This document shows, piece after piece, positions 1,756 to 45,244 of a stretch of DNA of 64,000 bases (position 1 is its first letter; every line of letters begins with the position of its first letter). The notes under the pieces are model-generated. The model was not told where the DNA came from and did not search any database. It was given only the letters and a program-made list of their open reading frames with translations. The translations under genes and the position numbers were made by a program. Location: the NCBI GenBank assembly GCA_964234715.1, contig OZ174279.1, one strand, 5' to 3'. This DNA is from Podarcis melisellensis. Its lineage: Eukaryota.

Positions 1756-1782
1756 ATGATGATGCTGAGAGTGGAAGAGCTG
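1756..1782 (+). CDS. ANKRD1: ANKRD1 coding exon 1 (MMMLRVEEL)
   Basis: ATG at 1756 downstream of a TATA box; donor GTAGGT at 1783. Confidence 0.93.
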
Positions 1783-4700: not shown

Positions 4701-7700
4701 CCTCCTTGCCTCTGACCTTCATGCTTCTTATCTCCCCTGAATACATCTTTCCCTCCATCAACAAAGCTTACAAAGCCGTCTCTGGGTCATGCGAAGGGTG
4801 TTAAATTGACAGCTTTCCTTTCCAGATGCTGGGCTATGCACATTTCTACCTGTTCCCTGAGCATTTGGAATCAGATGAACAACGTTCAGTGCCATGATTT
4901 CAACTTGCCCATTGTTTTCCGAAAAGGCACCCTGTCTTTGAGCCATCATTTTCACCTCTGTTTCCTCAGTATTTCTCGAGGGCTGCCTGCCCTGTCCTCA
5001 CGTGTTAGCTCTGCTTCTCAATATGTCAGAAAGCAAGACGTTGACACTCTTGTACCATTGTTCCTTTGACAGGTGACAGGCAAAAAGGCAGACGGTAGAG
5101 AGACAGGAGATTTCCTCCCAGAGGACTTCAAAAATGGAGAGTATGAAGCTGCTGTAAGGTTAGAGAAACAAGAGGACCTGAAGACCCTCACGGACCACTC
5201 AGTTGCACGACACAATCTGACCTACAAAGAAGAGAAAGCGCTAGAAGCTGAGGTAAAATTGTGTTTCTTGTATATCTTTTTGCACCTCTGGAGCTCTGAA
5301 GTTTCAAATTCCTGTGATCTGCCCTCTAACTAAGAAGGGAGTTTAGTAAAATAGATAGGTCCTGATAGATGTACACTGGAAACCAGTAGAAAGATTCCCA
5401 CCCCCAACCTCCAAGGTCTTGTTACATTGCCAATATGTTATTAACTGGGACTCAACATATCCTAATTATAACTAGAAAACCAGGAATGAGAGGAAATTAG
5501 AAGGGATAGGCCACAACTCCCTAGGGAATACACCTGTTTTACATTTAAAAACCCACGCTCTACATATTCAGTGTATTCAGCTAAGAGTGTCACAAACTAC
5601 AGGATTGGGGAAAAGGTTTCTCTGAAAATCTGGGAAATGGCTACCAGTTATGGCTGAAAGCCGTGGATTAGAGACAAACCAAGACATTTCGGTATTTGAA
5701 GCAAAAAGTAAACCCAAGTCTCCAGGCAGATATCTCTCCTCTTCACTGGAGATACTGGGGATTAGGGATGGACAAATCTGTTAATTTCATTTTCTCATTT
5801 CCCCACCTGCATCAATTTGTGATTTATATATATATATATTTAAAAATGTTCTCATAAAAAATTATCACTTTAATGTAACTGTCTGCTATACATATACTTC
5901 CATGCAGTTTTGCCTGCTATACATATCCTCCCCCCAACAGAATGCATTTTATATGTTATTTTCAGGAAAATATGCAAACTTTGTCTTAATGTATGAATTA
6001 CAAAAGAACTGCTGTGAAAATTCAGAGAAGTACAATTTTGTAAAGATAGCTTGTGTTTTGGTTTGCACATAGGCCAGTTTGCATTAAAATGTGAATCAAA
6101 TTTCTCACCCATCTCTGCTGAGACAATTCACACTGAGACTTTCTGCATGCAAATAATGTGTTATCCCACCCCTCACATGCCAAGGACATATTGGGACATC
6201 TGAGTGTTCCTCCTTAAAACCATTTTTGCCTTCCATTTATAAGATAAGGTCATCTGCAATTGTTTAGTTCAGTGCCAACAGAATTATGCCCATCATTTCA
6301 AGAATGGCAACATTGTTAAAAATCTTCCTCAATGAGAACAAAATTTTAAGGTGGACAATAAAAATAAGATTCTACCAACCCTTCCTCAAAGATATATGAA
6401 AATAGGAAAGACATTACTGGAATTTAAATCCACAGACTTTTCCTTTGAAGTAGCAGATTATTGTGAGCTGGTGATTTAGCATGTTACAGCTTCCCTGGCG
6501 ATGGATTATTCAAATGAAGAATTACAGAACAGGGTTAAGTTTAAGGGGATCCAAATTCTACATGGGTTTTAAAGGGTTTTGAATCAACCGCCCCTTCACC
6601 AGCCCAACACACTTTTTGCAATGAAGGTTCAACTTGAGACTTGATCAAGAATCACTCCAAAAAGGAGAAACAGTGAATCTGTCAGAGCAACAATCATTCT
6701 ACATTTTTTTGGGGGGGGGGGTAAATTATGTCACTCTTTATCACCTTGTTTTGTGAAAAGCAAGTTGGGTTGTTACTCTACCTTAAAGATGTAGCCTGTG
6801 CTTTAAATATAGGCTGACACGTATTTATAACTAGAATAAATTCTAAGGAACATGTGACCCTGTGCTATGTCTGGATGGTTCCTTCATCACTTATCTGTCT
6901 TACATTTAAATAACTAGTAGCATTTTTTCAGCAGAATTTCAAGTGGTATCTTTAGATTTGAATTGGTGTATTGACATTAGTGTAGTATTAGTAGCTGAAG
7001 TAACGCCTTTTCTGATTATTTTAAATGTTGAAGGAGATTCCAAGGGACCCTGGAGATTGTATGTTGAAGCTAATGTTATTGTTCCTCATATTGCTCTAAT
7101 TTCATGGCAGTCACTCACAGTCGCTACTTCCAGTGCCTTTTTTCCTAGAGACGTGCCAGAACTCACCACGAACAGTTCCCTTCTTCTCTTAGAATGGCAA
7201 TAGCACCCACCTGAGAGGTGCCTGAACTGAGTTCCATTGAGTTCTGGCAGGGGAAAAAAGCCCTGGCCATTTCCACCATTGGAAGTTGTATGACTCTGAA
7301 TACCAGTTGCAGAGATTCACAAATGGGAGCAGGACATTTACACTCAGTTCCTGCTTGCAGGCTTTCCATAGGCATCTGATTGGCTACTGTGAGAACAGGA
7401 TGCTGGAGTAGATAAAACAGTGGTCTGGTCCAGGAGGGATCTTCTTATGTTCTTATTTGCTTTTGTTGTTGTTGTTGTTCAGATCAAGAAAAAGAAATTA
7501 GAGGCGAGACCAAAACTTGAGAGCTTGGAAGATCTTGAAAAAATCATTCAGCTGAAGAAAAGGAAAAAATTCAAGAAGGTTAAAGTGCCCATGGTAAAGG
7601 AGCCTGAGCAAGAAGTTATAGTAAGTTCAGGGACAAAATAGTCTTCTCTGCTGTCTTTATGGAGTTCCCACACACGGAACTGAACTAACTCTTATTTCTG

Positions 7701-10700
7701 CTCTTCATCAGACTGAACCTGTGGATGTTCCAACATTTTTAAAGGCTGCCTTGGAGAACAAGATGCCAATAATTGAAAAATACCTGGCAGACAAAGGAGA
7801 TCCAAACGTTTGTGATGAGGTATGATTTGACCATCAATTTCTGTCCCAAATCTACTATAAGGCGCACATCTTTGATCTTAGCTTTAACAGTCATGGCTTT
7901 CTCAAAGGATCCTGGGAGTTGTAGTTTGATGAGGGTAGAGAAGGTTCTCTCTCTTTAAAGAGCCTGATCTCTCCCCAACCGCTGCTGTTTTCAGATCTCC
8001 ATAGGGAGAATGAATGCCTCTCAAGCCAGTTTTTAAGAGGTTTTTATGTCCTCCTTAAAAATTATATCTTAAGGTTAAATTTAAAATCCACCACCACTCT
8101 GTCAGTGTTACCTTTTGAAGCAGATACACTTTTCATGGTTAAAGTATTCTGAACTCCCAAGACAGGAGAGCATTGTTTCTTTAAATGGGCATTCAAGCAA
8201 TATCAAAAATCTATTTCCTTGTGCTTGTCGTGTTTTGTCTTCATGAATTTATGCTGTTTAAATTGTACAGCTAAGAGAGCCTACTGTTACTGAAGAGTGG
8301 CTTATAAACTGACAAAACTAAACAAGTTAAGTACATAAATGCCATACGGGGCTGTTGTTAACAAAAGACTGAAATTATGATTTATCTGGCATTGTATACA
8401 TATCTGTACATGACACCATACATGGTAATGAAAGAGAAGGCCTTGCCTTCAGGAGCTTAATTGAAACGAGGGGGAGGGAAGTTTAGCGAGGCACAAGAAG
8501 GAAATGTAAAACCTTACATGTGCATGTCTTGTTTTGGTAAGGGTGAGACGGGCGGGGTTAATTTATGTGTAAAGTGTTTTGAATATTCAACATGCTAAGG
8601 GTTGTATGATTTATTTCAAAGCCTTGCAGGTTAAAATTGACCACACTATGACTATTCCTTTTGACAGTACAAGCGCACAGCCCTGCACAGAGCATGCTCA
8701 GAAGGGCACCTGGCAGTTGTGGAGAAGTTAGTAGAAGCAGGAGCCCACCTTGAATTCCAGGATATGGTAAGTGCTCATTGGACACATGCAGAGTTCCTTG
8801 GGTTGGTTCACACAGACACACGTTCACTACTCATCCACTGTAACCATCAGCAAGCGATGCCTAGCCTGTTGCAGATGGAACCACTACAGTGGTACCTCGG
8901 GTTACAGACGCTTCAGGTTACAGACTTCACTAACCCAGAAATAGTACCTCGGGTTAAGAACTTTGCTTCAGGATGAGAACAGAAATTGCACAGCGGCAGT
9001 GGGTGGCCCCATTAGCTAAGGTTAAGCTTAAAAACAGTTTCAGGTTAAGAATGGACCTCCAGAATGAATTAAGTTCTTAACCCGAGGTACCACTGTATTA
9101 CCTCCTGCTATCTCAAACACAAGGCTTTTCTTTTCAATAAAGTTTTTTATTTTTCAAAGTAATAAAACTTTTATCAACAATAACCAGGCACAAGTCTAGT
9201 GGCCAGGACTCATCAGGACATGAGTAATTAGGTGCTGAAAACTCACATCATATGTGAACCAGTTGACAAATATTTTTTATTATTTCCCCCTGGCGTAGCT
9301 TGAATCCACAGCTATTCACTGGACCTGCCGTGGGGGCAATGTGGAAATCCTGAAGTACTTGCTGAACAAAGGAATAAACAGGAATGCTAGAGATAAGGTA
9401 AGCTATTTCCGTTTGAAAAACTGAGGTGGGAAAAGTTAAAAGTGGATTTGCAAGCTGTTTGTACAAGAGGCCCTTTTAGATCCGAGCTTGTTGTTTCGCA
9501 CTTTAGAATGCCTTGCCCTGCTTCTGTTAATTATGCCTCTCCCTGCCCTTCCTTTTCTACCAGTTGCTCAGCAGTCCTCTACACGTGGCCGTAAGGACAG
9601 GTCAGTACGAATGCGGGGAGCACCTCATCGCCTGTGAAGCAGATCTTAATGCCAAAGACAGGGTAAGTCAGGGGTCAGCAAACCTTTTCAGCAGGGGGCT
9701 GGTGTACTGTCCCTCAGACGTTGTGGGGAGCCGGACTATATTTTTTTGGGGGAAATGAATGAATAACCCAGAGATGCATTTTAAATAAAAGCACACCTTC
9801 TACTCATGTAAAAACACCAGGCAGGCCCCACAAATAACCCAGAGATGCATTTTAAATAGAAGGACACATTCTACTCATGTAAAAACATGCTGATTCCAGG
9901 AACGTCCGTGGGCTGGATTCAGAAGGCGTTTGGGCCGGATCCAGCCCCTGGGCCTTAGTTTGCCTACCCATGGGGTAAGTGCATTCCAGATGTGTGAGCC
10001 AGGCTGTAAATTCCACCATCCCTGACTATTAAGTCATGCAAGCTGGGGCTAAAGGAATCTGGCAGCCCCGGTAGCACCTGCGTGGTGGTGTTCAAAGGTT
10101 ATCCTTTCAGCTGAAGGTCCATTTCCATAGGGCAATCTTTTCCCGTATGACATTCTTGTTAGGGCAAGCCTTATCAAACAACATTCCCATGCAGCAGAAG
10201 GGAAAGTGGATGTACAAGCCTTTCCCCCAACAAGGCTACATGCACAGGATATATAAGCAGCAAGAGTCACAACGCTGCTCAGAGGGATGCCAATGAGGAT
10301 GACATGTGTCCACCTCCAAGGTCCTTCTGGCGGTTCCCTCACTGTGAGAAGTGAACTTACAGGGAACCAGGCAGAGGGCCTTCTCGGTAGTGGCACCCGC
10401 TCTGTGGAATGCCCTCCAATCAGATGCCAAACAGATAAACTACTACATGACTTTCCAAAGACATCTGAAGACAGCCCTGTATTGGGAAGTTTTCAATGCT
10501 TAATGTTATTTTATGTTTCTAGATATGTTGGAAGCTGCCCAGAGTGGCTGGGGTAACACAATCAGATGGGTGGGGTACAAATAATACAATTATTATAATA
10601 CAGCACAAATCACTTCTCTAGCATGGAGAAGGAACATGCATTATTGCAGGAATTTGGTGATTGTAGCCCTATAGTCTCCCAAATCCACCAACCCCAGCGA

Positions 10701-11724
10701 GCATAAGCAAGAGTGAGGGATGATAGAGGTGCAATGACACCTGCAGTTTACGGACTCCCCATTGCTCAGTTAGTGTCTTTAGGGTAGTAAAATAGCAGGT
10801 GATTGTGATCTCTTAAAGGAAACTTCAGGGAGAGAATAGCAATAGTACTTAACATTCCTTTGAATCACCCATTTCAACTCAGCTTCACAACAGCACACTT
10901 AAATAATAATCATTATCACTATTGGGTGCAAGATGATGGTGTAATTTATTGAGTACTTTCACTATTACACCAGTAGAGCCCCAAAGCTCATTATATTCAT
11001 TTTTGTCTCCTCTGTTCTAGGAAGGAGATAGTCCTATGCACGACGCAGTGAGACTGAATCGTTATAAAATGATTCGACTCTTGATCATGTATGGTGCCAA
11101 CCTAAACATGAAGAACGCTGTAAGTATTCCCTAACTCTTTGCTCTTTTCCTAAGTAAGCCATGTTGAGTTTATAAAGAAAATCAGGACACTAGTTACTAA
11201 AATAAAAACACCAAGATGACCGCAGTAGGATTGGATTGCATCTAACTTTTGCTGGTTTCCACGTTCCTAGATTTTGCTGTCCACATTCACTTTCTAGTCT
11301 TGAACATTTGTGCTAGCAAATTGACTGGTTGTGAGGAATAGGTGCTATTGGGCAAGAAAGATGCACTTGTTGAATGGAATTAGTGTCTGCGGGGGATGCA
11401 CATTCATTGCCCATGCAACACCCTCAAAGTTGGCATGCACCCAGAAAGACATTTTTGATGCATTTGTCACTTCAAAGAGGCATAAGCAGTCATTATTAAG
11501 AGAGCTTCCCACTACCACATCTGCAGAAAGTTAAGTCACAGAAACAGAATAGAGCAATGATGACATTTCAAGGGGGTGAAAATTAATGCCGTTTCCCTAA
11601 CTTTCCTCCATAGGAGGGGAAAACTCCAATGGATCTTGTTCTGCAGTGGCAAAATGGCACCAAAGAAATATTCAACAGCCTGAAGGAGAACTCTTACAAG
11701 AGCTCTCCTATAGACACATTCTGA
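1756..11724 (+). CDS. ANKRD1: Ankyrin repeat domain-containing protein 1 (CARP), complete 9-exon gene, 319 aa; join(1756-1782,5073-5252,7483-7620,7712-7819,8668-8766,9299-9397,9564-9662,11021-11119,11614-11724)
   Basis: Spliced translation [17 protein letters not shown]...LEKQEDLK...IKKKKLE...[17 protein letters not shown]...[10 protein letters not shown]...LHVAVRTG...[19 protein letters not shown]...TF* closely matches vertebrate ANKRD1 as recalled. All introns are GT-AG and phase 0. Four 99-nt ankyrin exons. Confidence 0.98.
5073..5252 (+). CDS. ANKRD1: ANKRD1 exon 2
   Basis: tttgacag|GTG ACA GGC...GCT GAG|gtaaaa; 180 nt. Confidence 0.97.
7285..7456 (+). mobile_element. CR1-like 3' end abutting the ANKRD1 exon 3 acceptor
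   Basis: GGCATCTGATTGGCTACTGTGAGAACAGGATGCTGGAGTAGAT...TTCTTATGTTCTTAT; sibling copies at ~34680-34862 and ~50030-50330. Confidence 0.6.
7483..7620 (+). CDS. ANKRD1: ANKRD1 exon 3 (basic/coiled-coil region)
   Basis: ttcag|ATC AAG AAA...GTT ATA|gtaagt; 138 nt. Confidence 0.97.
7712..7819 (+). CDS. ANKRD1: ANKRD1 exon 4
   Basis: catcag|ACT GAA CCT GTG...GAT GAG|gtatga; 108 nt. Confidence 0.97.
8668..8766 (+). CDS. ANKRD1: ANKRD1 exon 5 (ankyrin repeat)
   Basis: [33 protein letters not shown]; AG/GT flanks. Confidence 0.97.
8887..9095. mobile_element. Tc1/mariner-type MITE family A, copy 1
   Basis: TIR CAGTGGTACCTCGGGTTA; TA TSD. Confidence 0.9.
9299..9397 (+). CDS. ANKRD1: ANKRD1 exon 6 (ankyrin repeat)
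   Basis: [33 protein letters not shown]; AG/GT flanks. Confidence 0.97.
9564..9662 (+). CDS. ANKRD1: ANKRD1 exon 7 (ankyrin repeat)
   Basis: [33 protein letters not shown]; donor GTAAGT at 9663. Confidence 0.97.
9669..9972. mobile_element. hAT-type MITE at the ANKRD1 exon 7 donor
   Basis: Ends CAGGGGTCAGCAAAC / GTTTGCCTACCCATG; 8-bp TSD GGGTAAGT; internal ~55-bp duplication. Confidence 0.9.
10320..10599 (+). mobile_element. L2 LINE 3' fragment
   Basis: Same family as 17595-17966. Confidence 0.8.
11021..11119 (+). CDS. ANKRD1: ANKRD1 exon 8 (ankyrin repeat)
   Basis: [33 protein letters not shown]; AG/GT flanks. Confidence 0.97.
11614..11724 (+). CDS. ANKRD1: ANKRD1 exon 9 (last coding exon)
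   Basis: [36 protein letters not shown]; TGA 11722-11724. Confidence 0.97.
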
Positions 11725-12615
11725 AGACTCAAAGCGTCAATGGACTGGACAGTTTCCTTGCAAAAAGCAAGATATCACCAATGTGAAGAGCAGGAGCATT
11801 ATAAATGCTGCCACCTTCACAGAATACAAGCAATTTGTCCTGCTGCCTTTGCTAAAGCCGCAAGGAACCAAGAGGGTCCTGAAATACTTCAAAGGCAGTT
11901 TCGAGTGTTGAGAAGCCTCTGATTTCAAGCTGGTTTATTTATTTCTATTCCATCATTTCTCCCATAGTGTTTCTTTTCCGATATTTTCAATAAGTCATGT
12001 TGGTACTGCTGTTCTATAGAAAAAGACCATCTTACTAATGTGGTAATCTGAACCAGTCAGGAGCATTAAGCCCCTTTAAAAACCGCACACAAGCCAACAG
12101 GCTTTCAGAGCCTATTAGCAGTGTTTCCCATTAAACCCTCTTTCGATAGGCAGTATTTGTTATTGTCACCCGGTTTCTGCTGAATTGCTATTGTCAGAGC
12201 AAGCTGTTAAAAAAGCAAAGATCAGAGGGTTGGAGAATAGTAGTGAGAAAGGGGAAAGCAAAGTGGAATTTTAAAAAAGGAAGGGCTCTGCTCTTCTGCC
12301 GAAGTTTTTAATTCAGGCTACCTGAACTACATAAGAGGCAGCCAACATGGCACTGTCCTGGTGTTGTGGGATTAAACCTCCCTACCAACCCCATCGACTG
12401 GCCATGCTGACTGGGGCTGGTGGGAATTGGGAGTCTAGGAACCTCTAGAGGCCGCCATATTGGTTACCTCTAAATTGCAGTGTTCAAGACAGGAAGTTGG
12501 GCAGACGAAGAGGACGGAATCCAAAGACGAAGAGGAAAAGTTGCCGTTACTGTCGAAGCTCGATATTGTAACAAATGGTAGTGTATATTTGTATGGCTTT
12601 TTATGTACATTTTGT

Positions 12616-13921: not shown

Positions 13922-14407
13922 ACCTACCCTCACTTGATTTCCTCCTGGGAAGGCTTGCTTCTGGCCTTGGATCCTAGTCGGAAGAAAAGGGGCACTTTTC
14001 TGCTAACCATCCCTTCTCTGCATGAAATCACCTCTGCCCCCCCCCACCCTGTCTCCTTTGGACGGCAACCTGTGTTCCAGAGCACAGTTCTGCTAGTGTC
14101 ATAACGAGAAGATCCTTTTAATTCAAACCCTTAATTTAACGCAATAAAAAGAAAAGCTCTTAGAACTTCTTTCCCCCCTCACACACACACCTTTGGGGAG
14201 AAAGCCAATTACAGCCGTGCCTTAGGAAACTGAAGATAAAAGGGCATCACGTGGAAGAATAGACATTCCAAGGTAATGAGACAGAAAGCACCAGCCAAGT
14301 CTTAATTCTCTTGTTCCCGTCAAGGTGAAGATGGCTGTTGCAGTTTCAGCTGGGCAGAAAGTAAGCTGTGTCTTACATGCGTAGGCAACAATCTTGTTAG
14401 TCAATGG

Positions 14408-14595
14408 CAGACGGCCTTCTCAGTGGTGGCGCATGCCCTGTGGAACGCCCTGTGGAAATAAACAACTATCTGATTTTTAGAAAACACCTGAAACCAGCCC
14501 TGTTTAGGGAAGTTTTTAATGTTTGATCTTTTATAGTGGTTTTAATATTCTGTTGGGAGCCACTCAGAGTGGCTGGGGTGGGGAATAAACAAACA
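14408..14595 (+). mobile_element. L2 LINE 3' fragment
   Basis: Same family. Confidence 0.75.
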
Positions 14596-19693: not shown

Positions 19694-22600
19694 CTTTTCT
19701 GCTGCACTGGATAAAACTATATTCTAGGAAATAAGGCAACACAAAAAAACTAATTAGTGGAAGTTTCTGAACGCATTCCCTTTCTTCTCTGAAAGGCTTT
19801 CCCCAATGCAGAACCACAATGTGAACACAAAATGGCACATTATAGACACACACACCCTCTGAGCAGCCTTGTGCCTTGCAGAGCACAATTCACTGTGCAT
19901 ATCTCACTGGGAAGCAAACACGCCATATGCACCTTTCTCACAACCTACAGTGATTCCTTGGGTTAAGTACTGAATTTCTTCCAGAGGTCCGTTCTTAACC
20001 TGAAATTGTTCTTAACCTGAAGCACCGCTTTAGCTAATGGGGCCTCCTGCTGCCACCGCGCCTCCAGAGCACGATTTCTGTTCTCATCCTGCAGCAAAGT
20101 TCTTAACCTGGGATAATATTTCTGGGTTAGTGGAGTCTCTAACCTGAAGCGTCTATAACCCGAGGTACCACTGTAAAGAAGAACTCTGGGGAGTGGGAGC
20201 GAGTCCTGTGGGCACAGGGGAAAGGACTCAAGGAAATGATTCAATATTGGTGATTAATCAAACCAAGACACTGCTATAGTGCACTTGAATCAGGATTCTC
20301 TTAAGCTGCATGGACCGAGTGATTACAAGTCAATGTGCTGCAGAGATTTGAGAGGTGAAGTAGGAGCTAATAGGCCAGGGTTCAAAGCCCTCCTTAGTCA
20401 TGAAGTTCACTGGGTGACTTTGGGGTTGTGACTTTTCCTTAGCTTAACCTACCTCGCAGGGTTGTCGTAAGAATAAAATAGTGTGTGTATGTACATGCCT
20501 ATGTGTTGGGGTGGGTGGGGCAGAACCCTATACAGCCGTACCTGTTCTGGAAGTCCGTTCGACTTCCGAAATGTCCGGAAACCAAATTGCGGCTTCTGAT
20601 TGGCTTCAGGAAGCTCCTGCAGCCAATCGGAAACCCCGTCAGACATTCGGCTTCCAAAAGAACATTCGAAAACCGGAACACTCACTTCCGGTTTTCAATC
20701 ATTGGGGAGCTGGAACGCTCAACTCCCAAGGCGTTTGGGAGCCGAGGTATGACTGTATGCTGCTTCAGCTCCAGGAAGGAACAGTGGGCTGTAAATAATA
20801 AAAAAACATGGCATGGACTTTGGAGAATATATTCTCAGAAAAAAACTGGAATAGGTTACGTTATTTCATGCAAACCTGACTCATCCTAATTCAAAACCAC
20901 AACATCCACGACCGGCAAGAACAAAATGAGGAATAAGACAAGCACCCATTCTGCTTTTGTTTGTCATGGGCATGGGGGTGGTAGTCTGGGGCCCATCAGC
21001 TGGGGATGGAATGGGCCCCCACCCACACGAAATAGAACTTCGCTGACCCCACAGGCATGCAAACAAATATTGGTCTGACAAAGAAAAGTAAGCAGCACAG
21101 GACCCATTCTCTGTGGCTTTCAGGGCCTATTGAATTAATTAGCTGCTTAGTTGAAGCAGAAGAAAGGGGGAGGGGTTGGTCTACTTGAGAAGGGGTGGGG
21201 AACACTGGGTCCCTCAGATATTGCTGAACTACAATCCCCATCATCCTTGGTCACCAGCCATGTTTGCAGGGGCTGATGGGAGTTATAGTTCAGCAGCATC
21301 TGAAGGGTCTGAGGTCCCCTACTGAAATCTTACAATCTCGCGAAGTTGTGGATTACTCTTAGGACGGCAGCAGGCTATGTATGCACCATGCGGTTAAAAC
21401 AACAACAACAACCCCAAACACTTTCCTGTTTTAAATACGTAGGAAAGAAAGCGATGGAGGACCTCTTTTCTTTCTATTACTTTCCACAACCTCCTCCACG
21501 CCAAAAAATAGCCATGAAGTCCTGAGGTTCTGTTCTGAGAGAGAGGGAAGGTTTCACAGAGGCTAATAAAAAGCACCCTCTTCCTGAAGCCTCCCCCCCC
21601 CCCGGAGCCCCAAACAGCATTTCAAGGCTCCTGTTTTAGGATGGCCCAAATTCTGCTGAGAAGACACTCTTGTTAAGGGCCAGTGACCCAGACATTTCCC
21701 CTCTCCCCTTCCTTCAACAGGCAATCTGATGTTAATAGTCTGCCCTCCTTCAGGAGTTCCGCAGCTTTCCTGAGAAAGTTTGCAAAGTCAGAAACGTATC
21801 AGTTACACCGAGCTCTCAAACAATGATCATTTGCTGCGGTGATCGAAGACCAACAGAAGGAAAAGGGGAACAGTTCAAGCTGCCTATTCTTAATTCAGAA
21901 CAACATTAACTGGAAGGGGGGGGGAAAGTTCTGACGAAAAAGAAGTGGGGCAAACCCATTTTGAGCCTCACCTTCCCTCGGCAGATCTGCATCAGACTGA
22001 GTGCATTTGAAACCGTGTATCTTCTCATTGTGGAGTCTTTGATGGCAGGCACATAAATAAGTTCAAAGTAGATGCCTCGATCTATTGCCTTCACATGAAA
22101 GAAAAGCAAACAGAAGCTGAAGGGAGTTTGACACAGTCAACGTCTCACAGCTATTGTATATTATTGATGTGTTTTCCCTGCTGTCTCATCTCCTCCAAAA
22201 AGCAGAGGCACCCAGTGGGACAAAGTTAATGGCTCTCTAGAAAAGCAAAAGTCCCTCTTCCTCCTCCTCTGCTACACATAACATAAAAAGGACACAGTAT
22301 TCCATGCTCCCGCACTTGGGATTTCCAAACTGTAAAGTGTTTGGCAATTCCACACCTCTGCAAATCTGGTATTGTTTCTTCTGGTTTTTTTTTTAAAAAA
22401 GTTTCAACAGGAGAATTTGGATTTTGGCAGGGTGTATAAAAGTCCAAGCAGTGCCACAAAACCTCATGCCCACCTTGTTAATTAATTAATGCTATTTATA
22501 TACTGCTTAATTACTGTAGAATTCTATCCATTATATTTTACCTGCCCAATCAGAATGAATTTCAGGAACCAAAAGAGTCTTACTGAAAAATACAAACTTT

Positions 22601-25600
22601 GAGCTGCCTGGCCCCCAAATGTGCAACCAAGCATTCCGTTTTGGCTGCTGTAACCCTGATTTAAGAATCCATTGGGTGCCTGGGCTAATATATCTGTGTT
22701 TCTAACATGATACCCGAGCTGCTTCTCCACAGAGGACAAAACTGTTAATGGACAAGCAGAAAAACGAAAGGAGAAAGAAGAGGAATGTCAGGACTGCGCA
22801 CGACATTTGCAGGCCACCTTACCACATTCACAGAAGGTCTCTTGATGTAGAACGGCAGCTTTTCTGTTACGTTGATGCACACAATATCTACGTCTAAGGT
22901 TGTGCAGGCCACCTGTATTGCAAATTTGAAAGCAGAGGGTTACTTTTTTTTTTTAAAAAAGGCAGACACTGACATACTTGTATAGTTTCTCTACAAGTTC
23001 TAGTATTGTGCCCTGCAGCAGAATAGCTGACAGGAAAGCAATTGTTGCCCAAGTGTCAAGGAAAGAGATGGGGGAAGCCGTGGCCTTCTAGGCATGGTTG
23101 AATGGTAGCTCCCATCAGTCCTACCCAACATTGTCAGCTCCCATCTTCACAGGATGGAAATAAGCGGTTTTACTGGATCGCTTCTATTCCGTATGTTGAT
23201 TATTCTTAGTTGAAAATTTAAGGGTTTCGTTGAAGCGAGAACTGAGTAGATTGGGTGGGCGTACAGAGAGCCTGATGGTTGAATCAAGTGCATGTGGGGG
23301 CTGTTGTGTTTACGTTATAGTTTTGTGTACTGTGAAAATGTGTATGTGATTTTGGAGACGGTATGATTATGTGTTTCTTTTTATAGGATGTACGAGATTT
23401 CCAAGATATTATACTATAATTATGCTGCATTTTGATGTTTTCCACAGGATCTGCTTTTGTGGCTCTTAAGTTGTCTTTACAAATGTACATTGTCTAAAAA
23501 CATTTATTGCTGTTTAATTATGTAATTTAAAATACGGAACTGCTGTGAGGTACAGAATGCAGAATCCGAACTGCATTTCTTATATCGGCACCATTTTCTT
23601 GAGATATACAAGCTGTTTAGAGATTTCTGTTGACATGCGAAGCGGTATACAGTGGTACCTCGGGTTACATACGCTTCAGGTTACATACGCTTCAGGTTAC
23701 AGACTCTGCTAACCCAGAAATAGTGCTTCAGGTTAAGAACTTTGCTTCAGGTTGAGAACAGAAATCGTGCTCCGGTGCCGCAGCGGCAGCAGGAGGCCCC
23801 ATTAGCTAAAGTGGTGCTTCAGGTTAAGAACAGTTTCAGGTTAAGAATGGACCTCCGGAACGAATTAAGTACTTAACCCGAGGTACCACTGTATAAACTA
23901 AACGAAGCCCAACAGCACCTGGGAGACCACAGGTTCTTCATCCCTTCCAATGGACCTAGTGTATTCTTCCAACATTGCATGTTGAGGTCAGGGCGGAAAG
24001 GGGTTAATCAGAGCAGCATTGAAAGATCTCATATGCTTAATGATGGTATGTAAAACCCTGGAGCAAACTTTCAGAATGCAAGGGAGGAATCCAACTAAAA
24101 AAGGTTATATTTCAGAGAATTTGGAGAGCACATACACTCCCTTCGTATAATATCAAAACATAGTATATCTATGGGCTTTCCCCTCTTGAGCGTCACATAC
24201 AGTGATCCTTACAAGAACCCTGTAAGGCAGGACAGCATTGCAGAAGAGAGGTCAGGACAGAGGTTGTAGTTTGTCCAAGGACCCTCAGGGAGTGTCTAGG
24301 GCAGTGTTAAAGCTTGACAGCTAGCAATTTCCTTGCCACCAGAAAGAAAACTCAGCTGATTCCATTCTTGAAACCGTGGCAACATAATTATTCACACCAT
24401 CAAAAGGAATCTTAAACAGAATCTGCATCAGCCAGGGACACAAAACCCACAAGAAAGGGAGTTCTTCAAACTGCAGCAGCAGCAACAACAAAGCTGACCA
24501 ACATTCGTCCAGAACGATGATGTTAGAAAAGAAAACTTAACCGCTGGCTTTTGTACAAACTCTCGATTTTTCCATGACTTGTAGGGATTTAAAATACTAA
24601 GTATGCAGAGAAAAGAAAACCTTGGGGTAGGGGTGAGGGCAAGGTGGGAAGAATGCTGAAATGTGGCCTATTATTCTGGGAAAAAATATTTCCTTCCTTT
24701 AACAAGAGGCAACACTGCCATCTGCTGGATACAGGACTGCTCTCCATACCAAATATATCACTTGAAAAATCCAACTAGTTCCTGTCCCAGTGTGCAACTG
24801 TTGTACGTTTACAGTTTAAAAACCCCATATTGTTGCTAGATAAAGAATAGCAGTATTTTTTCTCTTGCCTTGGCATTCACCCAAGAAGCAGCGTTCAGTG
24901 AAATCTCTCCTCACATCAGAAAGAACAGAAATCTCCATTAGATCCCTGCTTGTCCATCGCTACAAGAAGCAGTAGTAGCATGCGTGTAACCCTGCAGGAT
25001 GCATTTCCTTTGTGGGTATAAACCTTCTTGCAGTGGGAAAGACGAAAGGTTGGGACAATGGACATGACTCCAACCTCTGTACAACAGGCTACATCAGAGA
25101 TTCTCATGCAGGAGAGCAAACAGGAGTCACTCTCACAGTTCAAGGCCCTTGAGGAGGCAGAGAAGTGAAGGGGGTAGCCTAGAGAGAAGGCCAGTGGATA
25201 CGAGGTCTGAAGGGCTAAATGTGGCCTGTAGGCCCAAGACTTCCCAGCCCGATATAGAACTCTGAACACTCCAAAGCCCCTCACAAATGTGTTTGGACAA
25301 CAGTATCTTGGCCAATATGAAGGAAGCACATGTCCGGCTACAGTTTTTTGTTATGTCGAGTCCAGGAAGTCTTCCTCATCAGATGCAGCTTGAGCTGTGG
25401 CCACCAAGGAAAAATGTCCCTTTGGGTCATCTGACATCACTGTGATGTCAGATGACTGACAGGCGAGCAGCTTTTGGAAGGCCCGTCTTAGCGAAAACAC
25501 AGAGCGAGTCAATAATCTGCAAGTGCCTTAGGGAGAGTCACTCTTGGGCATGGGTAGGCAAACTAAGGCCCGGGGGCCGGATCCGACCCAATCGCCTTCT

Positions 25601-28600
25601 AAATCTGGCCCGTGGATGGTCCGGGAATCAGTGTGTTTTTACATGAGTAGAATGTGTGCTTTTATTTAAAATGCATCTCTGGGTTATTTGTGGGGCTTAG
25701 AAATTCGTTCATTCCCCCCTCCCAAAAAAATATAGTCTGGCCCTCCCCGCAAGGTCTGAGGGACAGTGGACTGACCCCCTGCTGGAAAAGTTTGCTGACC
25801 CCTGCTCTTGGGCATCAATCACTGAGCTGCCCATTGGCAGACCTGTGATCCACAGCAGCAACTACACCACATGAAGAAATAAAGTGTAGGATCAGGCATT
25901 AGCAGTGCCATTAACAGCTTCTGGGTTTTGCAACTTCCTTCACAATTCAAATGCTCGGGGTGGGGGGGGAAGGAATTTTCAAAACTTACATGAAAGAGTT
26001 TTCCACTCTTAGGAAACACAGCAAAGATGTCATAAAATTTTATGTTGGTAGATGTCGATCTCTAGAGCAGAAAAGAGAAAAAGTGTAACATTAAAAAAAC
26101 AAAACATTTTTCAGACTAGCCATTTAAGCTGGTGCTTTAAGCCTGGCCATAGCCCAGCTCAGCCAATGCCCCAACAAACAGCAGGAAGAAGCCACTTGTA
26201 GCCAACATGTCTCCTCCAGCACTTTAAATCCAAGGCACTTTCTAAAGGGGGGGGGGAAATGCCCTGTTGACAAATGGAGCGTTTTCCTCTCTCCTGAGAA
26301 AGCAATTTGCATTCCAAGAGCTGGGGGAAGAGTTTAGAATACAAACTGCTTTCTCTCCATAGGGGAAAATGCTGTTTTCAAGCATGTTGGCTCCCAGAGA
26401 AGAGCTCACCGCTAAGACTACAAACCTTGGCTATAGATCTTGGTTGAGGAAGAGACACTTTAATCACGATACCTGGTTCAGATGATACACTAAGCCAAAC
26501 TTGACTTGCGCTGTACTAACAGAACTGAAGGCAAGCAAAGCAGGATGAACGCCTCTGTGAGTGGGCACATTTGCACAGTCCTGGTAAATTGGTTTACCAA
26601 GTAAACCATGGAAAATTTGGTTTACCATGGTGTGCAAGTGAGGCCAGTTTTTCCACTGCTCATGAAGCCAGATTGCCGGTTGATTCATCCAACATTGGCT
26701 AGATGCAGGCCTTTTTTCATTTGGTCTGGGAGGGAGATGTCCTGACTGACTCCAGCTACAAAAAGCTGAAGCTGCTTCTTCAGCACAAGGGTGACTTGTA
26801 GACAACCATTTTCCTGAGAAAAGTTAGTGTCTTCAAATGGGCAAACAAATAAGTTTTTACTGCGGTTTTCTCCCCAGATTGCCAGGGTAACATTTCTTCC
26901 ATAAATAACGAAAAGATGTGCTGGCAGGCAAATTACTAAAATTGTATTGTGAACTAGTAACTTTGGTAGACATTTATGAAGGTGGTGGTGATGTTCCATG
27001 CCTTGCCAACCATTCTTAAGTTTCTGACAATTCTGGAGCATTTATTACTCAAGAACTATGGATTTTCTTCACTGTCTGTAAATTTGACTTGACTTTTAAA
27101 AAACTACAAATTTAGACATTGGGGGCCATTCAAATTTCTCGTGGAAGAGAGTTCCAGAGGTCAGCAAAGTTGTAAGGTAAAGGTAAAGGGACCCTGACCA
27201 TTAGGTCCAGTCGTGGCCGACTCTGGGGTTGTGGCGCTTATCTCGCTTTACTGGCCAAGGGAGCCGGCGTACAGCTTCCGGGTCATGTGGTCAGTATAAC
27301 TAAACCGCTTCTGGCGAACCAGAGCAGTGCACGGAAACGCAGTTTACCTTTCCACCGGAGCAGTACCTATTTATCTACTTGCACTTCGATGTGCTTTTGA
27401 ACTGCTAGGTTGGCAGGAGCAGGGACCAAGCAACGGGAGCTCACCCCGTCGCGAGGATTTGAACCACCAACCTTCTGATCGGCAAGTCCTAGACTCTATG
27501 GTTTAACCCACAGCGCCACCCGCGTCCCCTATAGCAAAGTTGTAGTCTATCACTATAAAGCACAACAGATTCTAAGCCACTCTTCTTCTTCTTTCTGTGA
27601 AATAGAAAAGGTTGTGAACTGCATCATAAGCTTACTAGAATATTGCAGTGCGATGGATCAGAAACAACAAGTGTTAGCCTCGATAAAATCTTAATTGGCT
27701 TGGATTTCCCCTGCAAAGAAGAAGAGAAGCAGCCGTGAGGGAAAGGAGTGAAACAGAAACCTTGGCAACATGCCTCCTACTCATCATTAATACAAAAATG
27801 AGGAATGATGCTGTGTTCAGAATTGGTGCCCACACAAATCTTGTATCTTTGCCCTTTCTTTAATTCGTCAGGAGTGTTGGCAACCAAGGTCTATTTTTAG
27901 TCAGACAAAAGGGCTATAACTGTGCTGTTCATAGTCAAGTAATAAGACCTTACACAGAGGACTCAAGGACTCTGCTCCTGGTGGAGAAGACTGTTACTTT
28001 TCACTAAAGACGCTTATAACTCCTGCAGTTAAGCAGCTCCTTGCCTACAAGCCCGTTTCCAACAACTTCACTCAGAATTACCCTTAAATTGCAATCCATC
28101 AATGGAAAGTGAGACAGCTGACCATTTCTGCTAATTACCCCCTGCTTCCTTGTTGCAATGCACTTTACGNNNNNNNNNNNNNNNNNNNNNNNNNNNNNNN
28201 NNNNNNNNNNNNNNNNNNNNNNNNNNNNNNNNNNNNNNNNNNNNNNNNNNNNNNNNNNNNNNNNNNNNNNNNNNNNNNNNNNNNNNNNNNNNNNNNNNNN
28301 NNNNNNNNNNNNNNNNNNNNNNNNNNNNNNNNNNNNNNNNNNNNNNNNNNNNNNNNNNNNNNNNNNNNNGAGTTTGTTTGCTTGCTTTCCTCTCACCTCT
28401 CCATCCTTTCCTTTTTGTGTCATGTCTTTTTCAGAGTCTAAATCCAAGACCAGGGAATATGTTACGCAGTTAGTTTTATTTGTTTACAAGAAAGTCTGAT
28501 CCTTTTTTTGGCTGGAAACCAGGGTATAAATACTTCTAATGAATAAACAGAATTCCTCACGTTTGATACAACGAAAACAAGTGTAGCTTTGTTGCATGTC

Positions 28601-43587: not shown

Positions 43588-44735
43588 CTGTGGAAGCTTA
43601 TCAGAAGTTGGCTTTTCTATCCAGCTTAGGCTACTAGGTGTGCTTTCACTTTCCTCTGTTCCAAACTCGAGTCAATCATTAAGTTTATGGTTGTTGTTTT
43701 TTCTTAATCATGCCTATGTACACAAATGCCTTTTGCTATTGTGTGCTTTTGAGACACTAAAACGACTACTGCTAAATAGCCTTTAAAACAATTCATGGGG
43801 AAATTGCATTTCCTCTTTATGCTGTCAAAACGTTCAGCGCTTCGGATCAGGCGGCATTCTAATTTGGAGCATGCCAGATAGAGAAAATAATACTTACATC
43901 GAGTCAGATGCCTTTTACAACACCTTTCAGTGCTGGACTAGATGGTCCCGTAATCCGATTTAGCAGGGCTCTTCCTGTGTTCTTAGACACAGATTTAGGG
44001 TCCTGCATTTATTTTTCTTACATGAATTTAAGAGAGCACAACAGATTGCAGTACTGATGACTGCAAAACTATTACCTGAAAGTATTCTGAAGTATGCACA
44101 CTATGTGCAGATGTCTCCATCCAGGCCCCTAGAGAAATTGATACATAGAAAAATGACCTCGTCTCAAATCCATAAAAAGATATTTTGATTTCCCATTCCT
44201 ACACACTGAGTCAGAATTTGTTTAAATCAGCAAAACCTTTATTCCGCATTTAAATTGTCAAGACGTTGAAATGTATTTTGACAGTGCCAGAGAAGTGAGT
44301 TTTATTGCCGCCTCCTTCTGCTGCAAAGTGACGGAGATTTATTTGTGCAAAACGCAGAGATGGCAGCACAGGAGACAGCAGCTGCAACATCTCTCCTGGA
44401 AGTCAAACAAGAGCTGCATTTGATAAACAGTTCATGGTGGGAATCAATATCAAGCTAAAATATGACACAGCTTCAGAACTTACTTAAGACTTTCATTTTT
44501 TAAAAAATGATAAATATTTAGACAACGTATCTCCAGCACAGAGTTTTTGTTGTTTTCAGCTCATAATGGCAAGAATTTACATAACTTTAAAAGGAATTGT
44601 AGAGATTACGTTGTTTGTTGTCAGAAAAAGGGAAAGAGGGATAGGACAAACAAAGGAGGAAATGAAGTAAGAACGAGACAGAGGACAAACTGGGTCACCT
44701 TCACATAGAGTGGGGGGCATTCTGTGGAATGATAA

Positions 44736-44978
44736 GAGAGCCAGTGTGGTGTAGTGGTTAAGAGCTGTAGTCTCGTAATCTGGGAAACCGGGTTCGCGTC
44801 TCCGCTCCTCCACATGCAGCTGCTGGGTGACCTTGGGCCAGTCACACTTCCTTGAAGTCTCTCAGCCCCACTCACCTCACAGAGTGTTTGTTGTGGGGGA
44901 GGAAGGGAAAGGAGATTGTTAGCCGCTTTGAGACTCCTGAAGGGGAGTGAAAGGCAGGATATCAAATCCAAACTCTTT
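44736..44978 (+). mobile_element. tRNA-derived SINE (MIR/Squam3-like)
   Basis: A box TGGTGTAGTGG, B box GGTTCGCGTC, CORE-like GTGACCTTGGGCCAGTCAC, L2-like tail. Confidence 0.75.
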
Positions 44979-45244
44979 TAAGACTCCCACCTGAGACTAG
45001 ACAAAACCTTGGCATTTAAGAACATTATGCTAGCACCTATAAGGAAGTATATTGCAAAGGACACTAGTTATCTGTCTATTGCTAGCAACCGGGAAGCAGT
45101 TGCACTGAAAGAAGGGATGAAGCATGATAGTTTCTCAAGTTGCTACCTCCAGAGAATCTCTTCCACATTGAGGTGAATTACCAAACAATCCCATAACTGT
45201 CAGGTTTGGTTGGGGAGAAGCCTTTGCTACACCAGTGGAACCAC

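Follow-up and report, generated by a model that had tools for sequence, protein, structure and literature searches.

A hAT-type MITE at the exon 7 splice donor of ANKRD1 in a lacertid genome: two donor copies, of which the upstream one probably does the productive splicing

The 64-kb stretch of DNA analysed here (the window) comes from a lacertid (wall-lizard-like) genome and carries a gene of nine exons on the + strand, with 960 nt of coding sequence (319 codons plus stop) and introns that are all GT-AG and all of phase 0 (Table 1). Exon 7 is bordered by the acceptor ...TTCTACCAG/ and the donor AGG/GTAAGT, the slash marking the exon boundary. For naming the gene, we used queries from exons outside 8600-12600. 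Exon 2 found nothing in the ESM Atlas, exons 2-4 found nothing in Pfam, and a word search with exon 2 returned unnamed Logan fragments only. A large representative search yielded partial ANKRD1 models, and the one from Naja naja (P0018) led to named ANKRD1 proteins of many vertebrates. The 319-aa translation is similar to these named proteins over its full length, which identifies the gene as an ANKRD1 (CARP) orthologue. Reading the sequence, we take each of ANKRD1 exons 5-9 to encode one ankyrin repeat. The protein has been described as having 319 aa and five ankyrin repeats (review PMC5535855).

Table 1. Positions of ANKRD1 exons, the MITE insertion and related features in the window
Feature	Position	Strand	Description
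ANKRD1 exon 1	1756-1782	+	
ANKRD1 exon 2	5073-5252	+	
ANKRD1 exon 3	7483-7620	+	
ANKRD1 exon 4	7712-7819	+	
ANKRD1 exon 5	8668-8766	+	
ANKRD1 exon 6	9299-9397	+	
ANKRD1 exon 7	9564-9662	+	99 nt; encodes aa 218-250, a single ankyrin repeat; both ends in phase 0
Left target-site duplication GGGTAAGT	9661-9668	+	Last 2 nt of exon 7 plus original, upstream donor; GT at 9663-9664
hAT-type MITE	9669-9972	+	304 bp, non-coding, terminal inverted repeats matching at 12/15 positions
TGA in exon 7 frame	9756-9758	+	32nd codon past exon end; 216 nt upstream of downstream donor
MITE internal tandem duplication	9762-9903	+	71-nt spacing; cores 9762-9816 and 9833-9887, 52/55 identical
Right target-site duplication GGGTAAGT	9973-9980	+	Second, downstream donor GGG/GTAAGT; GT at 9975-9976
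ANKRD1 exon 8	11021-11119	+	aa 251-283; preceded by ...TTCTAG
ANKRD1 exon 9, coding part	11614-11724	+	aa 284-319 plus TGA
Second copy of the same MITE family	25549-25804	-	256 bp; own perfect 8-bp duplication CCCAAGAG at 25541-25548 and 25805-25812

ANKRD1 proteins were all compared one exon at a time. The translation matches Podarcis ANKRD1 (P0099, a sequence common to several Podarcis species) at 318 of 319 residues, and the sole difference, V106M (exon 3, codon 106), may be the mark of a different species or allele. With Lacerta agilis ANKRD1 (P0026) the identity is 315/319, corresponding to four differences. These figures place the genome among the lacertids, near Podarcis. Exons 7, 8 and 9 are all protein-identical to Podarcis ANKRD1, exon 7 being equivalent to P0099 residues 218-250. 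Consequently, the reading frame 3' of the insertion described below is still conserved. The known protein joins ...AKDR to EGDS..., which corresponds to the junction 9662->11021. Some of the database models depart from this structure. Two 286-aa ANKRD1 models, P0025 (Phrynosoma) and P0028 (Gavialis, isoform X2), map to every exon in the window but exon 7, so skipping of this 99-nt phase-0 exon is annotated in other reptiles; several 286-aa mammalian ANKRD1 isoforms are also among the listed matches. The Podarcis muralis UniProt model P0101 (421 aa) agrees with ANKRD1 up to and including exon 8, after which comes a repeat-like tail resembling the window at 44735-45052 (-) and 22559-22894 (+). 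The prediction is probably chimeric.

At the exon 7 donor, the initial annotation had described a hAT MITE whose target-site duplication consists of the last two nucleotides of exon 7 plus the full GTAAGT, so that two donors lie 312 nt apart with the transposon between them. Our analysis bears out each of these points. The 8-bp duplication GGGTAAGT is perfect on both sides of the MITE, its copies are 312 nt apart, and it covers exactly donor positions -2 to +6. Both donors are intact: the upstream one reads AGG/GTAAGTCA at 9662/9663 and the downstream one GGG/GTAAGTGC at 9974/9975. From -2 to +6 there is no difference between them; they diverge only at -3 (A upstream vs G downstream) and beyond +6, where the insertion has changed positions +9 to +12 after the upstream exon end to GGGG. 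Removal of the element and one duplication copy reconstructs an empty site, ...GACAGG/GTAAGTGCATTCC..., which is an ordinary donor; the sequence expected before the insertion is ...AAAGACAGGGTAAGTGCATTCC.... Intron 7, counted from the upstream donor, is 1,358 nt long with the element and would be 1,046 nt without the element and one duplication copy.

The MITE itself (9669-9972) starts with CAGGGGTCAGCAAAC and ends with GTTTGCCTACCCATG; CAGGGGTCAGCAAAC and the reverse complement of the opposite end, CATGGGTAGGCAAAC, agree at 12 of 15 positions. When the whole window was searched for further copies, the second family member listed in Table 1 was detected. Both termini of this copy are the same as those of the ANKRD1 copy, and it lacks the internal duplication with the 71-nt spacing. 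Since the second copy combines the same ends with a target-site duplication of its own, the boundaries of the MITE are set independently of the splice site and the gene. The two copies share 84% identity over aligned columns, and CpG decay is visible in both; the corresponding K2P distance of 0.18 gives only an upper bound on the age of the insertion, because part of the divergence may predate it. The K2P distance, together with the CpG decay, indicates that the MITE family is not young, and ANKRD1 may have been host to the insert for a long time.

The assignment to hAT follows from hallmarks known for this superfamily, namely an 8-bp target-site duplication and short terminal inverted repeats of 5-27 bp (PMC3517528). 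Both copies have 8-bp duplications, they share short inverted-repeat ends, and they are small (304 and 256 bp) and non-coding. In these respects they resemble other hAT MITEs such as Mar of Drosophila, which has 8-bp duplications, inverted repeats starting with CAG(G/A)GG and no coding capacity (PMC3517528). An autonomous element encoding a hAT transposase was not found within the 64-kb window. As for target choice, the pattern reported for Buster-type hAT elements is nnnTAnnn (PMC3517528). Of the two sites available in all, a number too small for an assignment, GGGTAAGT fits this pattern (T4, A5), whereas CCCAAGAG of the second copy fits at A5 only.

Two further ways in which the element might affect the transcript were considered and dropped. 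A hairpin formed by the MITE could remove the insert as a loop or block access to a donor; however, the RNA fold of 9655-9985 is unexceptional (z = -1.07) and the MITE ends do not pair. A cassette exon could be formed by the MITE-internal acceptor ...CCCTCAG (9711-9717) together with the downstream donor, but this would leave an intron of 55 nt behind the upstream donor, which we judged too short for vertebrates.

How might ANKRD1 have come to carry two donors at the end of one exon? In the scenario that we favour, a non-autonomous hAT MITE would have entered the exon 7 donor GTAAGT at its TA, the 8-bp staggered cut typical of hAT would have spanned donor positions -2 to +6, and repair would have left a complete donor on either side of the MITE. 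The original donor at 9662/9663 would then stay the working site and give the normal 319-aa protein, with the whole MITE and the second donor being removed within intron 7. The downstream donor at 9974/9975 would either be silent or give rise to a minor transcript that includes the TGA at 9756-9758 and is cleared by nonsense-mediated decay (NMD). In other words, we think it likely that the upstream donor does essentially all productive splicing and that the downstream copy contributes nothing or, at most, a small amount of by-product that is degraded, in which case the insertion would be neutral or nearly so. A hAT cut placed around the TA of GTAAGT should always copy positions -2 to +6; hence the donor would never be destroyed and an insertion of this kind would be survivable. 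It had been proposed earlier that the insertion was tolerated because the duplication left the proximal donor intact, and this proposal is well supported by the extent of the duplication, exactly -2 to +6, and by the intact state of ANKRD1.

Several lines of evidence speak for use of the upstream donor. The frame of exons 8 and 9 is intact and their translation is protein-identical to Podarcis; moreover, the known protein needs the KDR/EGD junction, and it is the upstream donor that makes this junction. Precedent comes from intron 7 of F7, where identical donor copies downstream of the authentic donor are silent in cells and splicing takes place at the site furthest upstream (PMC1557585). The arrangement is alike in that an authentic donor is followed by identical intronic copies; unlike in ANKRD1, where the second copy is transposon-made and 312 nt away, the copies in F7 derive from a 37-bp minisatellite and are 37 nt apart. 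Annotated proteins point the same way. We inspected five lacertid/Rhineura ANKRD1 proteins (three RefSeq-type 319-aa models, the UniProt model P0101 and a second Podarcis UniProt model, P0082) and found no MITE-coded tail in any of them, bearing in mind that the genomes they come from may or may not carry the MITE. A weaker argument is provided by the sequence between the donors. It is intron-like and rich in G-runs: there are seven runs of three or more G in the MITE, four of them in its first 100 nt, whereas the coding exons have 0.5 such runs per 100 nt. When two donors compete, intron-type or silencer elements (G triplets included) in the sequence between them suppress the downstream site (PMC1877881), but the effects of G-runs depend on context. 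Two features of the donors themselves have to be counted against use of the upstream one. One is that the two donors are nearly equal. The other is the GGGG that the insertion placed beside the upstream donor, since a GGGG in such a position can be mildly silencing in some contexts (PMC1079783).

The consequence of using the downstream donor can be predicted from the sequence. The exon would gain 312 nt and extend to 411 nt. Straight translation from 9564 gives the 33 residues of exon 7, 31 further residues and the TGA at 9756-9758, followed by several more stops inside the MITE in the same frame. The initial annotation had pointed to this in-frame TGA ahead of two later junctions, and it is indeed there, 216 nt before the junction at 9974, with a further junction at 11119. 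As a rule, NMD is elicited when a premature stop precedes a later exon junction by more than 50-55 nt. Given the distance of 216 nt and the additional junction, a transcript spliced from 9974 is a predicted NMD target; it should be either degraded in this way or a source of truncated protein. The predicted truncated protein has 281 residues and is devoid of those encoded by exons 8 and 9 (aa 251-319). Earlier it had been suggested that such a protein would lack the last ankyrin repeat. The truncation as such holds, but the count has to be corrected, as loss of exons 8-9 would remove the last two of the five repeats.

Transcripts containing the MITE need not depend on the duplicated donor. They could arise by retention of intron 7, in which case the second donor would be irrelevant to them. 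For the heart of mammals, ANKRD1 isoforms that retain intron 8 (i8) or introns 7 and 8 (i7,8) have been reported (Torrado et al. 2009, cited in the review PMC5535855), and any read-through into intron 7 would meet the TGA at 9756-9758 after 31 codons even without a second donor. We regard this origin of MITE-containing transcripts as possible, if doubtful. It is compatible with productive splicing from the upstream donor and does not exclude it.

Somewhat less probable, in our opinion, is frequent use of the downstream donor, by which a substantial share of the transcripts would include the MITE and the latter would act as a built-in hypomorphic or regulatory switch, either through NMD, which would lower ANKRD1 output, or through the 281-aa protein. 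The equality of the two donors from -2 to +6 is consistent with such use, and an extended exon of 411 nt lying between introns of 166 and 1,046 nt should be accessible to the splicing machinery. In mice, the consequences of losing ANKRD1 are mild, so that a partial loss might be only weakly selected against. Moreover, when two strong consensus donors were placed ~174 nt apart in vitro, splicing proceeded almost wholly from the downstream, intron-proximal site (PMC3413131). The normal product is also largely lost in two published duplications. A junction duplication in FGG leads mostly to aberrant RNA (PMC9052919), and an AluSx-like insertion at c.588+8_588+9 of MLH1, found in Lynch syndrome, entered the mRNA, the allele being pathogenic (PMC7767547). 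However, frequent use of the downstream donor is argued against by exons 8 and 9, which are intact and protein-identical to Podarcis ANKRD1, and in the F7 case it is the upstream site that wins over the pseudo-donors in cells. The G-run-rich, intron-like interior of the MITE should likewise disfavour its inclusion in an exon, and none of the annotated isoforms shows a MITE tail (among the five proteins, with the same proviso regarding their genomes). Published precedents thus point both ways on the choice of donor.

It is tempting to speculate that use of the downstream donor is regulated, for example during muscle stress, when ANKRD1 is induced. If this were the case, the MITE duplication would have created a switch specific to the lineage, by which unproductive splicing adjusts ANKRD1 output in wall lizards; we consider this improbable. 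Finally, that the repeat of GGGTAAGT is due to chance or to a local duplication unrelated to transposition can be dismissed for practical purposes: donor-like 8-mers are common and the window has one further copy of GGGTAAGT on the + strand (36969; zero on the - strand), but the probability of an 8-nt match at two fixed positions is 1 in 65,536, and the 8-mers lie exactly at the ends of a recurring element whose termini are found again at 25549-25804 with a different perfect 8-bp duplication.

Copying of a donor by target-site duplication is already known from MLH1, and ANKRD1 is a further example. The MLH1 allele is the closest precedent. In both cases, the element sits just inside the intron after the donor of exon 7; in MLH1 the duplication AAAAAAGTAAGTTC copies the donor, leaving the wild-type donor upstream of the insert and the duplicated one downstream, so that the same question of site choice arises (PMC7767547). 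In MLH1 a retrotransposon with a poly(A) tract gave rise to a 14-bp duplication, and the result is a new pathogenic germline allele in which the insert probably ends transcription (PMC7767547). In contrast, the element in ANKRD1 is a DNA transposon with an 8-bp duplication and no poly(A) tract, and the gene is intact in a reference genome. Introners, MITE-like DNA transposons that create introns, offer a second comparison (PMC11282704). They share with the ANKRD1 insertion a MITE-like element and a target-site duplication that supplies splice-site sequence at the edge of the element. However, introners land in exons and generate new introns, taking one splice site from the element and the other from the duplication (PMC11282704), whereas the ANKRD1 MITE hit a donor that was already there and made the intron behind it longer, providing no acceptor and forming no new intron.

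The ANKRD1 locus may be viewed as a natural experiment in splice-site choice, in which a native vertebrate gene presents two donors identical from -2 to +6 and 312 nt apart. It also illustrates how an insertion directly on a splice donor can be survivable owing to the 8-bp duplication. With assumed figures of three registers per donor, ~2 x 10^5 donors, a genome of ~1.5-2 Gb and 10^5-10^6 hAT-type insertions, our rough guess is that tens to hundreds of such donor hits would occur per genome before selection, so that finding one instance is not surprising.

Other features of the window include SINE-like pseudo-ORF stretches of a type common in squamate genomes, at 10348-10500 and 14401-14523 (a 13-residue peptide / AFSVVAHALWNAL); of the two, the former is within intron 7 of ANKRD1, 3' of the MITE. 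At 28170-28369 the window has 200 consecutive N, an assembly gap or a masked stretch, and upstream of ANKRD1 there is a perfect (ATT)16 microsatellite at 346-393.
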